DNA of 64,000 nucleotides. It comes from Epiperipatus broadwayi (Eukaryota > Animalia > Onychophora). Where the stretch lies: assembly GCA_028023455.1 (NCBI GenBank), contig JAQFVV010000001.1, forward strand, positions 1,364,001-1,428,000. Reading direction: 5' to 3'. Below are positions 52,301-58,300 of this stretch, one piece after another (positions within the stretch are counted from its first letter, which is position 1; each line of letters opens with the position of its first letter). The position numbers were made by a program, and so were the translations under genes. Under the pieces are notes generated by a model. The model did no database searches, was not told the origin of the DNA, and saw nothing but the letters and a program-made list of their open reading frames with translations.

Positions 52301-55300
52301 AGCTGCTATTGGATTTGTTTTAATTACAAATCCCCTCCTTTTGAAATAAGACAATGGAACAGTATAACTTTTCATTTCTCATTTCTATCCTTACTGCAAA
52401 AATTTTAACTTTTAATTTATTTCTCTAATAATTTTAGTACTTTGGTCATTTTAATAAATAGTGTTTTACAGAAGACATAGATCCATGATTTAATTGCTCA
52501 GTGATTTGATTGATGTTAAACTGTATAAAGAATGAATAGAATTTCAACTCTTATGATTTATGAAGATTCAATCATAAGACATTTAGATGTATGATAAAGC
52601 ATGAACACTAGAAGAATCATCTCAGTTTGACTTCTGTTAAGCTACTCACAGCACATCAAATATAAGTCTTACTCTCTTTTGAGTCTTAGAGGCTGATAAA
52701 TTCAATAAACAATCAACCTATACTTTGCTTCCTCTGAGCATTATAGATGAGTAAGTAAACTACTTGAAAAACATTTTTGTGGCAGCACCTGAAACAATAT
52801 ACATTTCAAAATATGATAACATAGTGTATCATGTGCATGACCAAATCCCAATATATAATTAGAAGTAGAATATATCTAAATAAACTTTCAAACGCGGAAA
52901 AAAAAAAACCTATGTGCCAGTCAAAACATGCTTATCCATCTAACACGAGCTGGAACTCACAAAATGTACTTCAAACCCAGTCAAGCCCGAGATTTAGGTC
53001 AGGGACCAGCCTGGATTCGAACCCACTCTCCAAGCACCAGATCTAACACCCAATGGATAACATAACAATGGTAGCACACGAGATTTAATTCTTCATCCGG
53101 CCCACTAGCAAATCGGAGAAAACAATAAGACTCATGGACTAAACATATATATAAACAACTTAAATACTAGACATTCCACAGATAAAATCTAACATATTTA
53201 AATAATAGGGGCTTTACTAATGAATACTTATGGGCAATTAGTGAATTGGATTGATTTAATAATGAGACAGAAACTGATATATGATGAATTAAAATATATT
53301 TATTGACAATTGTTGTTGGCAAATGCACACAGGCATTTCATTTATAAAGTAACATTCTCTAGACTATTTGAACAATAATTGATGTTGGCAAATAGGTTTG
53401 TGGCTATGATTCAATGGAGCCAAATATCCTGCTATACAACTAATCACTACATTAACTTATTTGTTATGTCCTTTTATAATCAGTTCGAGTGGCTCTTTTA
53501 CGTAAAATCAAACCAAGTCTGGAGTGAAACTTAATACATCTGACTATAATCAATTTATATATTAACTATGGGCTTATAAAGCATCCCAGATAGCTTAATA
53601 TCGAATGGGTTTTCAAGAATGCTTCGGTTCAATGCCGAAGATTGCATATTAGGGAGGAAAGAGTTGGCTATAACAATTTTACTAATATGCTAGGCACAAG
53701 TAAAGTATAATAATAAAGTGGCTCTGCGGATGGAAGAATAGTTTTAGGGTTTTTGTGACAAACAACGGTTTACCCAATAACCGGTCGTCATGCTGCTAAT
53801 GGGGAACCTTTATTTGGTTCAGAGGCGGGGGACTTACATGCTAATCTGGCCCGTAGCTCAGACTTCGCTACTGCACTACCCATAAGAGAAGATGGGCTGG
53901 ACTTACCGTGGCTCCATCTTATATATATATATCAAAAAGAACAGCACAACGAGAAAATATTAATAAATCCCACATCCGCCAAGCCGAAGGATATTATAAA
54001 TTAAAGATCATATATTAAATGAACACTAGATCATCAGCTTGATCAAAAGAGCCAACTCTTCTGTAGCATGAGAAATACGATATGCTACTGACAGGAATAT
54101 ATAGATACAAACTTTACTTTATCCCGTTCAATCTCTTTAGTTATCTATAACTACTAAACTTTTAAAAGGGGGAAAAGTATATTTAATAGGGGACTTACGA
54201 ATACTTAACTAAAAAAATATACTTATGATTGCACTCCAGGCTAGTTTAATCTTTAGTAACATAATAAATAAAGGTTGAAAAGCCACATTTTATATTTATA
54301 TTAATTAATTTACTAAATGACAAAAATATGAATTTGGGTTTTGAAACAGCGCACGAAATGACGCTATATAAATAATAATACGGAGATTTTAAATGATATC
54401 TTTTTAAAAAAACATATTGGTAATTAAATGCACGCTGTTTCGAAACATAGGCATAATTAACAATAATTAAAAATAAGCAAAAGAAAAGCAAAATATAACT
54501 GCAGTGATTAAATTATATAGCAAAATATTAATTAACAAAGAAATTTAGCAAAAATATTTCATTTATAGATTTCAAATACGATTTAGACAGAGTTTACAAT
54601 ATTATTTGGAAAATAATTTAGAAAGAAATTACAATAATATGGTTAGCTAACCTGTTTTTGAAGAAATCATGATTGTTTTTGAAATTCACAGAGCTCTGCT
54701 ATTTTAAATAATATTATAACAGTTCTACTATAGCTGAACTGGAGATATTCGAGCTGGAACGAAGGTGAGTTCTTTGGCAGCTTATGGCATGTTCTTATTC
54801 AGTTGCGAGATGATTTAAAATGGTGTTGGAACGAAGGCAAGTTCTTTTAGCGGCTTATGACATCTTTTATTTGGTGTGGTTGTTGCTTCGGCATTTGATG
54901 GATTGAACTCGGCATTCCATCACGGGAATTGCAGCAATTCTTGCCTGACTTTAGCCAGACATGGTAAAATTAAACAATTTTGACTTCGATAGTAATAGCT
55001 AGAAAAAAGAAGGGATTTTTTTTAAATAAAAAAAGAATTTCGTTTCAGTAAAATAAAAATCCGTTTATAATTAAAAATGAGAATTTTGTGTAGACAAGAA
55101 GTCAATTAGTGACGCACCCGGGTAAAAAGTAAAATCTAGTTTACTGATTGATTTTTGTTTGCACAAAAGACTTTATCATTAAATCAGAATACCGTTCTTT
55201 CTGCTGGGCCTTAACATTCTATAACACCTGAAAAGGAATTTAATTAATGAAACTGAGTCGAATTATATAATTTATGTGTTTTAATAATTTTTTAAAGTAA

Positions 55301-58300
55301 ATTAAATATAACACCTCGGAGACGTTATCTGTTGCAGAAATTGGATTATATTATTTTATTTAATTAAAAGTCAATTGGTCCCGAGGCAAACGAAATTCCA
55401 AAAAGGTGTTAAGGTTTAGTGGAAATGGATAAATAGGCCTTATTTTAAGCGGGAAGATAGACTCCATCTTGCTGTTGAATAGCTGTTAATATCAGAAGTC
55501 AAAATTGTTTAATTTTACCATGTCTGGCTAAAGTCAGGCAAGAATTGCTGCAATTCCCGTGATGGAATGCTGAGTTCAATCCATCAAATGCCGAAGCAAC
55601 AACCACACCAAATAAAAGATGTCATAAGCCGCTAAAAGAACTCACCTTCGTTCCAGCTCGAATATCTCCAGTTCAGCTATAGGAGAACTGTTTTAATATT
55701 ATTTAAAATTGCAGAGCTCTGTGTGAATTTCAACAACAATCATTATTTCTTCAAAATCAGGTTAGCTAACCATATTATTGTAATTTCTTTCTAAATTATT
55801 TTCCAAATAATATTATAAATTCTCTAAAATGAAATACTTTTGCAAATTTCTTTATTAATTCAATATTGTAAACTCTGTCTAAATCATATTTGAAATCTAT
55901 AAATGAAATATTTTTTGCTAAATTTCTTTGTTAATTAATATTTTGCTATATAATTTAATCACTGCAGTTATATTTTGCTTTTCTTTTGCTTATTTTTAAT
56001 TATTGTTAATTATGCCTATGTTTCGAAACAGCGTGCATTTAATTACCAATACGTTTTTTTAAAAAGATATCATTTAAAATCTCCGGATTATTATTTATAT
56101 AGCGTCATTTCGTGCGCTGTTTCGAAATCCAAATTCATATTTTTGTCATTTAGTAAATTAATTAATATAAATATAAAATGTGGCTTTTCAACCTTTATTT
56201 ATTATGTTACTAAAGATTAAACTAGCCTGGAGTGCAATCATAAGTATATTTTTTTAGTTAAGTATTCGTAAGTCCCCTATTAAATATACTTTTCCCCCTT
56301 TTAAAAGTTTAGTAGTTATAGATAACTAAAGAGATTGAACGGGATAAAGTAAAGTTTGTATCTATATATTCCTGTCAGTAGCATATCGTATTTCTCATGC
56401 TACAGAAGAGTTGGCTCTTTTGATCAAGCTGATGATCTAGTGTTCATTTAATATATGATCTTTAATTTATAATATCCTTCGGCTTGGCGGATGTGGGATT
56501 TATTAATATTTTCTTGTTGTGCTGTTCTTTTTGATGATATATAAGATGGAGCCACGGTAAGTCCAGCCCATCTTCTCTTATGGGTAGTGCAGTAGCGAAG
56601 TCTGAGCTACGGGCCAGATTAGCACATAAGTCCCCTGCCTCTGAACCAAATGAAGGTTCCCCATTAGCAGCATGACGACCGGTTATTGGGTAAACCGTTG
56701 TTTGTCACAAAAACCCTAAAACTATTCTTCCATCCGCAGAGCCACGTTATTATTATACTTTACTTGTGCCTAGCATATTAGTAAAATCGTTATAGCCAAC
56801 TCTTCCCTCCCTAATATGCAGTCTTCGGCGTTGATCCGAAGCAATCTTGAAAACCCGTTCGATCTTAAGCTATCTGGGATGCTTTATAAGCCCATAATTA
56901 ATATATAAATTGATTATAGTCAGATGTATTAAGTTTCACTCCAGACTTGGTTTGATTTTACGTAAAAGAGCCACTCGAACTGATTATAAAAGGACATAAC
57001 AAATAAGTTAATGTAGTGATTAGTTGTATAGCAGGATATTTGGCTCCATTAAATCATAGCCACAAACCTATTTGCCAACATCAATTATTGTTCAAATAGT
57101 CTAGAGAATGTTACTTTATAAATGAACTGCCTGTGTGCATTTGCCAACAACAATTGTCAATAAATATATTTTAATTCATCATATATCAGTTTCTGTCTCA
57201 TTATTAAATCAATCCAATTCACTAATTGCCCATAAGTATTCATTAGTAAAGCCCCTATTATTTAAATATGTTAGATTTTATCTGTGGAATGTCTAGTATT
57301 TACGTTGTTTATATATATGTTTAAGTCCATGAGTCTTATTGTTTTCTCCGATTTGCTAGTGGGCCGGATGAAGAATTAAATCTCGTGTGCTACCATTGTT
57401 ATGTTATCCATTGGGTGTTAGATCTGGTGCTTGGAGAGTGGGTTCGAATCCAGGCTGGTCCCTGACCTAAATCTCGGGCTTGACTGGGTTTGAAGTACAT
57501 TTTGTGAGTTCCAGCTCGTGTTAGATGGATAAGCATGTTTTGACTGGCACATAGGTTTTTTTTTTTTCCGCGTTTGGCGCCCAACTAATAGAAAGTTTTT
57601 TTCTTTTCATTTTCTGCAGAAATCAATTAATATTATGATCACACATTTCATAGTTATTTCCAACATCTAATTATCACTTTATTACTAACTTCTTTTAATA
57701 TGATCAATAAAAGTCTCTTGCTTTCTAGCAAGTTGGTAATTTTTTCCTTTTGTTAATTTTAATGTCAGTTTTAGTACTGTAATATATTTTAACTTTTAAA
57801 ACATTAAAATAATTTCATTTTTAAAACATTTCTCCTTTTAAATGGATACAAGGTTAATAAAAAATAAGCCAGCCTTTATTCTTCAATCATCAAGTTTTAC
57901 ATCTATCAAGATACTTTTGCAGTGGTGATGGAGTTCTCATCCTAGTTGATTTGAGATATGTTCTTCCATCTTCTGGGTCACTGCTGATTTCTTCATGCTG
58001 ATTTAGATATCATTCTCCTCATGTCCTGAATCTACTCTTATCTTTTTCTATTCCAGTACTAGTTCCAAAATGTGATTTCTTTGGGGATTTTTCTGGAATG
58101 TCTGGTTTCCTTAGGCTTGGAAAACTTCTAGAACGATTTATGCATGTTCTATCTCTGTTACCAGAGCTTCTTCTCTTTTGCTACTAGCTATAGGATCAGA
58201 ATCTTTAGTCATCTTTTATTCTAATACAACCAATAGATTTCTCATTCCTTTGGTTTGATTTCATCATTGGCATGGTGAACTTGCTTTCTCCATTACCTAT

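Follow-up and report, generated by a model that had tools for sequence, protein, structure and literature searches.

In yeast, replication intermediates of the retrotransposon Ty1 are captured by NHEJ at chromosome breaks, sometimes as two fragments (PMC11372161, PMC1976456), and PMC1976456 cites Moore & Haber 1996, Teng et al. 1996 and Yu & Gabriel 1999 for the capture of Ty1 cDNA at double-strand breaks. The locus that we describe here, a palindrome in an intron of CYFIP in the onychophoran Epiperipatus broadwayi, resembles these events in several respects: what was inserted appears to be partial, LTR-containing cDNA that entered without integrase and without a target-site duplication (TSD), its ends correspond to sites that are present only in intermediates of replication, a single event unites several separate pieces and the host junction was changed little or not at all. 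However, the Ty1 events are experimental, mostly of a somatic type and short, whereas here we are dealing with a fixed germline insertion in an animal, whose two pieces are inverted with both primer-binding-site (PBS) ends facing outward, giving a palindrome of 4.7 kb. A second parallel is offered by Tf1 and HIV-1, which can insert free of integrase through single-stranded ends at the PBS and PPT (PMC11042837); there too the primer-derived cDNA ends are reactive rather than the LTR tips, and integrase is dispensable. That route differs in relying on Rad52 single-strand annealing to homologous targets and in producing mostly tandem elements, while the CYFIP intron provided a target without PBS homology and received a truncated inverted pair. 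Mis-priming of strong-stop DNA is also possible (PMC6088434). Self-primed strong-stop DNA would share with our locus a nascent minus strand that is anchored at the PBS and uses like-polarity DNA as the template for its extension, skipping proper strand transfer, and an inverted-repeat dead-end product as the outcome; the classical form is one molecule snapping back within R, in contrast to arms of 2.1-2.5 kb, two templates and a germline location. Further parallels are found in the same genome and the same family. In four inverted-LTR copies (C6649, C6278, C12456 and C6795) two U3 termini face outward and 4-bp TSDs flank the unit (ATAG, GTAT, ATAT and ATAT, respectively), indicating that the inversions arise before integration, at the cDNA stage, and that insertion is a single step. 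Those copies expose LTR tips and carry integrase-made TSDs, whereas the CYFIP-intron unit has the PBS outward, lacks the LTR starts and shows no TSD.

Based on these comparisons and on the observations below, we propose that two PBS-anchored cDNA intermediates, stemming from different source copies, were probably joined and then captured, independently of integrase, where a chromosome had broken. In this proposal, both the existence of a cDNA stage and the end joining are inferred. Rather than a chromosomal duplication or a mobile unit, the palindrome is most likely a by-product of retrotransposon replication that came to a dead end.

The window, that is the whole 64,000-nucleotide stretch that was analysed, holds the palindrome between two collinear minus-strand matches to FragX_IP (PF05994). 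A CYFIP exon at 49539-49706 (model positions 552-600, E 5e-14) lies downstream of the intron in gene sense, and an open stretch at 60225-60449 contains the upstream exon (positions 502-552, E 5e-5, just under the Pfam cut-off). These flanking matches bear out the location inside a CYFIP intron given in the original prediction. An Rfam scan of 48000-62000 at gathering threshold returned no matches. In an inverted-repeat search, seven collinear inverted pairs of 94-100% complementarity tile 52898-54987 against 55495-57566, and alignment of the left arm (52889-55000) with the right arm (55482-57584) yields 2037 aligned bases that are 98.4% identical and differ by 33 substitutions. The left arm carries an extra 72 nt at ~54776-54847 and the right arm an extra 53 nt at ~55824-55861; between the arms lies a spacer of 481 bp (55001-55481). 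The symmetric part spans 52889 to 57576, beyond which the right unit continues for 8-9 nt, to 57584/5. Two inverted arms around a unique spacer (put at ~478 bp), the symmetric ends and the two repeat-unit indels had all been predicted from the letters, and they were recovered where claimed. The accompanying suggestion that the persistence of such a structure needs explaining is weak, given the 481-bp spacer, the 1.6% divergence, the two indels and several comparable survivors elsewhere in the genome. With such a spacer, divergence and indels the structure is an interrupted palindrome.

Arms and spacer are two partial retrotransposon end-repeats (LTR plus 5' leader) placed head to head, each arm being a partial copy of the 3.1-kb LTR and 5' leader of an LTR retrotransposon that is present in many copies and probably encodes only gag. 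A genome search for single-arm copies, a check suggested with the original prediction, gave thousands of first-look candidate matches to the arm; the 40 scored ones are 92-100% identical. In the structurally complete copy C139, direct 3104-bp LTRs that are 99.2% identical and end in TG..CA are flanked by the 4-bp TSD GTAT. Its ORF of 455 aa is gag-like: it matches Retrotrans_gag weakly, short of the cut-off (E 0.0013), and resembles gag-like proteins in the protein atlas, which hint at arthropod-like gag relatives. The 2.8-kb internal region of this copy holds no pol-sized ORF, and the family is therefore probably non-autonomous. Its PBS, situated 23 nt past the LTR, is an 18-nt match to the complement of tRNA-Lys1,2, a sequence type identified through PMC8775094; ARAGORN found no tRNA genes in the window or in 30 loci. 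C6649, with its 840-bp inverted ends, had suggested a DNA transposon with long TIRs, an assignment excluded by the direct-LTR copies, the TG..CA ends, the PBS and the gag-like ORF. Penelope-like elements (RT plus GIY-YIG), with their pseudo-LTRs, and DIRS-like elements (tyrosine recombinase, no TSD) were considered because direct and inverted repeats coexist in the family; TG..CA LTRs, the tRNA PBS, 4-bp TSDs and the gag-like ORF exclude both.

When the unit is mapped onto the family reference, 52889-54603 corresponds to 3129-1415, 54589-55000 to 1376-963 and 55031-55655 to 514-1136. The order in element coordinates is the reverse complement of 963-3129, then 3806-3859, then 514-3138. Within the left arm, 52913-55000 on the minus strand is a 5'-truncated LTR (reference ~963-3104) with family haplotype A at its inner end. 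The right arm has its LTR part at 55482-57551 on the plus strand, again ~963-3104, with family haplotype B at the inner end. The left arm ends at reference 963 and the right copy reaches back to ~514; the unpaired part of the latter (55031-55481, plus strand, reference ~514-962) forms the bulk of the spacer.

Where does the unit end? Both outer ends fall within the 18-nt PBS, at nt 2 on the left and nt 11 on the right. The left outer end (52889-52912, minus strand) consists of 24 nt of leader after the terminal CA of the LTR and stops 2 nt into the PBS (..TTTG); on the minus strand, the LTR finishes in ..GGCACA at 52913 and passes into the sequence common to 13 normal 5' leaders, and family homology ceases at 52889. 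At the right outer end (57552-57584, plus strand) the 5' leader is followed by an exact tRNA-Lys1,2-type PBS that gives way to host DNA after its first 10-11 nt. Synthesis of minus-strand cDNA begins at the PBS and that of plus-strand strong-stop cDNA terminates there; both outer ends lie where DNA terminates in replication intermediates and nowhere else. For two random breakpoints in a unit of ~6 kb, the chance that both fall within these 18 nt is roughly 1e-5. The exact PBS of the right end contrasts with a variant carrying 3 extra nt in all 13 normal 5' leaders sampled, and the only other PBS-truncated copy in the sampled loci, C6278, is exact too (truncated ends 2/2 versus normal leaders 0/13, Fisher ~0.01 for the sampled loci). 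Genome pattern counts place the exact PBS beside an ordinary leader in at least 58 places and the form with 3 extra nt in 183. The exact PBS is an inherited minority allele, present in about a quarter of normal copies, and with this genome-wide background two exact ends are expected by chance with p ~0.06. Since it is a normal minority allele, the right end need not be copied from a tRNA, and such copying has been downgraded as a decisive signature. Among the family copies examined in a census, no other outward-PBS palindromes came to light.

The unit interrupts an old interspersed repeat that is 72-79% identical to its paralogs, with a left flank at 51880-52888 and a right flank at 57585-58600; the two are contiguous in the paralogs L043, L045, L046 and L032. 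Five paralogous empty sites, which are paralogs of the host repeat at 72-79% identity and not the orthologous or allelic site, are continuous across the junction with no TSD and a host change of 0-2 bp, in agreement with the earlier claim that no TSD surrounds the whole unit. The same empty-site comparison shows no homology of the host target to the PBS. On the evidence of these paralogs, the whole unit entered the old repeat in one step, without a TSD and without loss of host bases. A stepwise chromosomal origin, by two insertions in opposite orientation, nested or adjacent, followed by deletions that left two LTR-plus-leader pieces, can appeal to the extreme abundance of the family and to the different arm haplotypes, as two separate insertions would give. 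It is nevertheless quite improbable: when integrase inserts members of this family, 4-bp TSDs result, both boundaries adjoin a host repeat that is contiguous in the five paralogs with next to no change, and the deletions would need to reach precisely to the host DNA at either edge and to end within one 18-nt PBS.

The arms themselves speak for joined cDNAs from separate sources. Sites 110/114/119, 1820 and 2072, all polymorphic in the family, distinguish them, as do two polymorphic indels; at family-dimorphic sites the differing arm always shows the other family allele, while ~0.02 such matches are expected from random decay. The nearest relatives of the left and of the right arm are different family copies. 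As they carry different family haplotypes, neither arm would have been copied from the other, and their allele content points to two different source copies. In principle, haplotype differences could also reflect later gene conversion by other copies. That one arm was copied from the other by snap-back self-priming of a single strong-stop cDNA or by in-situ fold-back duplication during replication or repair, is quite unlikely: most arm differences are indeed private to one arm, as later decay would give, but the differences at family-dimorphic sites and in the two polymorphic indels far exceed the expectation from decay, and a duplication made in situ would not coincide exactly with the limits of the insertion. 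The different haplotypes and indel alleles speak against intramolecular snap-back, with both arms made from one molecule. The private substitutions are unevenly spread, with 17 in the right arm and 7 in the left, and 11 of those in the right arm cluster at 56515-56897; a test for inheritance of this cluster from a subfamily was negative, the best non-self match being 98% and the cluster missing in other copies. The capture model offers no explanation for this imbalance or for the cluster.

The centre is asymmetric. A filler at 54990-55043 (plus strand) matches the leader of the element itself over 54 bp (reference 3806-3859), a stretch located ~300 nt before gag begins; ~30 nt of the filler are unique beyond the overlaps. 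Its left joint is the self-complementary AGCT and its right joint an imperfect A/T-rich match, so that microhomology is seen at both. The stretch was sought in both arms and is contained in neither; its template lay outside the inserted DNA. The central joint occurs once in 5.6 Gb, and all other scored matches cover one side only, which argues against a mobile foldback element. Long inverted arms and a short spacer would suit a palindromic, non-autonomous transposon moving as a whole, and other inverted-LTR units of the family did integrate as single pieces with TSDs. Yet with a joint that is unique, no TSD and ends that are PBS fragments rather than transposon or LTR termini, such an element is extremely unlikely. 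Palindromes are a familiar kind of error in long-read libraries and the assembly is fragmented (18,588 contigs), both of which favour an artefact, be it a chimeric fold-back read or the collapse of two loci. The original prediction had argued from the arm differences against a fold-back artefact, and the 33 substitutions, the different family haplotypes and the two indels agree with it, as do the asymmetric centre with its templated filler and microhomologies and the collinearity of both flanks with the host repeat. An artefact is accordingly very improbable.

The capture of joined cDNAs may be pictured as follows. Two incomplete cDNAs from two family members, each anchored at the tRNA-Lys PBS, would have extended back into the LTR, reaching ~963 in one case and ~514 in the other. 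The longer cDNA may have switched template once, copying the ~30 unique nt of element leader (54 bp with overlaps), and the two like-polarity strands would then have met at the self-complementary AGCT. They may have been joined by mutual priming inside the particle or by ligation as fragments during repair, and we hold these two possibilities to be about even. The product would be a linear DNA with PBS ends and without LTR termini, which integrase cannot use for that reason, and which would have been patched by end joining into a break in the old repeat of the CYFIP intron, leaving no TSD.

What are the implications of such an event? If this model holds, a mystery palindrome becomes a datable fossil of a reverse-transcription accident. 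It would provide animal-germline sequence evidence for two processes known mostly from yeast and the test tube, namely the joining of like-polarity nascent cDNAs and the integrase-free patching of replication intermediates into breaks. It would also represent a retroelement route by which long inverted repeats are generated in a large, repeat-rich genome, where they bear on genome stability and on the dsRNA load of host genes such as CYFIP. Intronic inverted-repeat hairpin-RNA loci are known as sources of hpRNA and endo-siRNA and as editing substrates. The CYFIP-intron unit resembles them as a long inverted transposon repeat inside a gene with predicted long dsRNA; it differs in that its origin would be fully explained as an accident. 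For the CYFIP-sense strand, ViennaRNA predicts a structure with 2013 inter-arm pairs, whose longest helix measures 386 bp and whose MFE is -3531 kcal/mol. This prediction supports the earlier claim that the CYFIP pre-mRNA can fold into a stem of ~2 kb, of which siRNA production and ADAR editing are possible consequences. That the palindrome is maintained as a hairpin-RNA source of endo-siRNAs against the family, as an ADAR substrate or as both, is decidedly unlikely. The predicted pairing and an abundant, young target family would be in keeping with such a function; however, the arms show the decay seen in other copies too, with indels and a divergence of 1.6%, and a one-off accident accounts for their presence. 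Moreover, the same LTR family forms many further inverted pairs in the genome, and nothing therefore singles out this one. In a wider and still unlikely scenario, the LTR retrotransposons of this genome would routinely make inverted cDNA dimers, the PBS-ended, integrase-dead class of which would enter the germline by break repair and, in expressed introns, constitutively yield hairpin RNA that feeds RNAi or piRNA silencing of the source family, a self-limiting loop born of replication errors. For gene annotation, the unit is otherwise ordinary intronic repeat DNA.

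Based on the sequence analysis, we propose that the palindrome at 52889-57584 probably arose when two nascent cDNAs of an LTR retrotransposon family, both anchored at the primer-binding site (PBS), were joined head-to-head and then end-joined into a break. The palindrome is real; its material is ordinary, consisting of LTR copies, and its origin is uncommon and informative. As originally predicted, it consists of two inverted arms: a repeat search found seven collinear inverted pairs (94-100% complementarity) that tile 52898-54987 against 55495-57566. The arms align at 98.4% identity over 2037 bases, with 33 substitutions and two large indels: the left arm has 72 extra nt near 54776-54847, the right arm 53 near 55824-55861. 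Between them lies a spacer of 481 bp (55001-55481), and the region is AT-rich (GC 22-39%).

What are the arms made of? When the genome (5.6 Gb, 18,588 contigs) was searched with the left arm, thousands of first-look candidates were returned, and the 40 scored are 92-100% identical to it. Longer surrounding sequence was taken for eight copies and shows that the family behind the arms is an LTR retrotransposon. A natural copy on contig C139, which serves solely as coordinate reference, has two direct LTRs of 3104 bp (99.2% identical) with a TG start and a CA end, a 4-bp target-site duplication (TSD), GTAT, and an internal region of 2.8 kb. This region encodes one 455-aa ORF with a coiled-coil at its front, gag-like look-alikes in the protein atlas, which hint at an arthropod-like host, and a weak match to Retrotrans_gag that falls below the cut-off (E 0.0013). 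No pol-sized ORF was found in the 2.8-kb region, so the family is probably non-autonomous. The PBS lies 23 nt past the 5' LTR and matches the complement of the 3' end of tRNA-Lys1,2, an identity taken from published sequences (PMC8775094; PMC1084362). It is dimorphic: a form with three extra nt occurs at 183 places and the exact 18-nt form with the same leader at 58 or more. The same split was found in a sister subfamily (leader CCGGGTT), and the dimorphism looks like repeated resetting from the tRNA primer. The U5 side of the LTR holds a motif resembling a tRNA T-arm (GGTTCGAATCC type; 52990-53040, mirrored in the right arm), which suggests a tRNA- or SINE-derived module; ARAGORN called no tRNA.

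In element coordinates the left arm (52889-55000) runs in reverse from 3129 down to 963, and the right copy (55031-57584) runs forward from 514 to 3138. In each arm, therefore, the leader adjoins an LTR truncated at its 5' end, with the LTR starts facing inward and the PBS ends outward. Additional LTR sequence in the right copy (514-962) makes up most of the spacer, and the remainder is a filler of ~30 nt (a forward 54-bp match with overlaps, 54990-55043, to element 3806-3859) that derives from a part of the leader ~300 nt upstream of the gag start and absent from both arms. At the left joint the filler shares AGCT inside a 9/11 imperfect match, and at the right joint there is an imperfect A/T-rich match. 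AGCT is its own reverse complement, which pairing between the 3' ends of two strands of the same polarity would require. The central joint occurs once in the genome, and a mobile foldback element was rejected on this ground.

At the outer ends, the left arm stops after 2 nt of the PBS and the right arm after 10-11 nt. In the established retroviral scheme the PBS is the sole site of the element at which DNA ends exist during replication: minus-strand DNA has its 5' end there, and plus-strand strong-stop DNA its 3' end. The chance that two random breakpoints would both fall inside the 18-nt PBS is about 1e-5. An exact tRNA-type PBS is present at the right end and in the only other PBS-truncated copy found, on contig C6278 (cut at nt 12), whereas normal leaders in the sampled loci carry the three-extra-nt form in 13 of 13 cases (Fisher about 0.01). 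However, the exact PBS is also an inherited minority allele, so that copying of the right-end PBS from the tRNA primer is modestly supported by these sequences and not proven; the leader with an exact PBS start occurs at 20 genome places, in 18 of which the PBS is full, and only the window and C6278 copies are cut.

Did the two arms come from one molecule? Most substitutions are arm-private (17 right, 7 left), but the arms also differ at family-dimorphic positions, and each time one arm carries one family allele and the other arm the alternative. At the inner end, three linked changes form a haplotype that divides 23 comparison rows 14 to 9 (22 distinct copies, that of C6278 being entered twice), two more balanced family sites differ, and the arm states of both large indels recur in other copies. 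Random decay would be expected to yield about 0.02 such family-allele differences, and the closest relatives of the two arms are different copies. These observations point to two source templates. They disfavour a snap-back of one molecule, an inverted duplication made in situ and an artefact from fold-back reads, the last of which the original prediction had also argued against. The right arm additionally holds a cluster of 11 private substitutions of mixed types at 56515-56897 (within 380 bp; 2.9% compared with about 0.35% elsewhere in the arm). None of the 40 best other copies shares this cluster, and non-self matches reach 98% at most.

The DNA on either side of the unit is part of an old interspersed repeat (72-79% identity to paralogs), and in five paralogs the two flanks are directly contiguous. 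Base-level alignment to these bears out the predicted lack of a TSD: the 4.7-kb unit was added with a host change of 0-2 bp and no duplication. The assembly contains no allelic empty site, and non-self matches to the flanks reach 78% at best. Two nested insertions followed by deletions were rejected, because trimming would have had to reach the host boundary precisely at each end.

Integrase insertions of the family leave 4-bp TSDs, and inverted arrangements are common in it. Contigs C31, C12456 and C6795 contain LTRs or arms in inverted order, the longest reaching 5 kb, C6649 terminates in an inverted 833-bp LTR start and the C6278 copy is a 7.3-kb palindrome. In all five the LTR starts face outward, and TSDs are ATAG in C6649, GTAT in C6278 and ATAT in C12456 and C6795; the older C31 copy matches at three of four TSD positions. 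These copies were therefore integrated as single pieces, and inversion preceded integration, at the cDNA stage. Three of the inner joints fall at the T-run that immediately precedes the PBS, and one falls at PBS nt 12. In contrast, the window palindrome is oriented the other way and has no LTR tips, consistent with its missing TSD. The 11-kb palindromic copy of C6795 has ~100 bp of odd C/A-rich sequence at its inner joint (locus L023:3311-3415), between the T-run of the leader and the inverted internal region, that might represent filler added without a template or a patch of read errors. In C6278 a palindromic ~2.8 kb unrelated to the reference element (L018:6612-9454) follows the PBS cut at nt 12 within the TSD-flanked unit, and may derive from a foreign template to which copying switched at the PBS. 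C7585 is a tandem LTR-internal-LTR-internal-LTR array with a period of 6.3 kb, reminiscent of Tf1 tandem elements formed by integrase-independent insertion (PMC11042837) or of unequal recombination.

How might the palindrome have been assembled? Two nascent cDNAs, each anchored at the PBS and made from a different family member, the two members being for example co-packaged in one particle, would have been joined head-to-head into a linear product, which would then have been captured at a chromosome break by end joining. In the joining, the strands may have primed each other or reverse transcriptase may have switched template, which fits slightly better with the microhomologies at the joints, the filler templated elsewhere in the element and the pre-integration inversions of the family; about equally probable is ligation of separate fragments at the break, as multi-fragment capture is documented for Ty1 (PMC1976456). 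Precedents are known: breaks capture Ty1 intermediates, many of which carry nucleotides found only in cDNA (PMC11372161), Tf1 and HIV-1 undergo integrase-independent insertion via PBS/PPT ends (PMC11042837), and strong-stop DNA can mis-prime (PMC6088434). The palindrome is of moderate interest for retroelement replication and break repair; pending expression data, its interest for gene regulation is low.

CYFIP lies on the minus strand, and its exons were searched one by one, by reference. Profile matches to FragX_IP positions 552-600 (49539-49706, minus strand) and 502-552 (60225-60449, minus strand) place the palindrome within a CYFIP intron, as had been proposed. The suggested folding of the pre-mRNA is likewise upheld by prediction: CYFIP-sense 52889-57584 is predicted to form 2013 inter-arm pairs, with 14 helices of at least 30 bp, the longest of 386 bp (MFE -3531 kcal/mol), which makes a long dsRNA stem in every CYFIP pre-mRNA physically plausible. 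Such a stem may be diced or edited. The view that its persistence needs explaining did not hold, given the 481-bp interruption, 1.6% divergence, two indels and several counterparts elsewhere in the genome. Nothing in the sequence suggests selection, and arm decay resembles that of other copies. An Rfam scan of 48000-62000 at the gathering threshold found no family, including at 59483-59537. Candidate remnants of other elements were noticed in the window. Two overlapping ORFs of 123 and 133 aa at 48069-48771 (minus strand) contain by eye a GIY-YIG-like motif (..GYIGES..RTEEH..) that suggests a Penelope-like element remnant, and a Pfam search of them gave no match. On the plus strand, an ORF at 168-479 matches zf-RVT weakly (E 0.009) and another at 62545-63033 contains reverse-transcriptase-like text; both are probably remnants of non-LTR retroelements.
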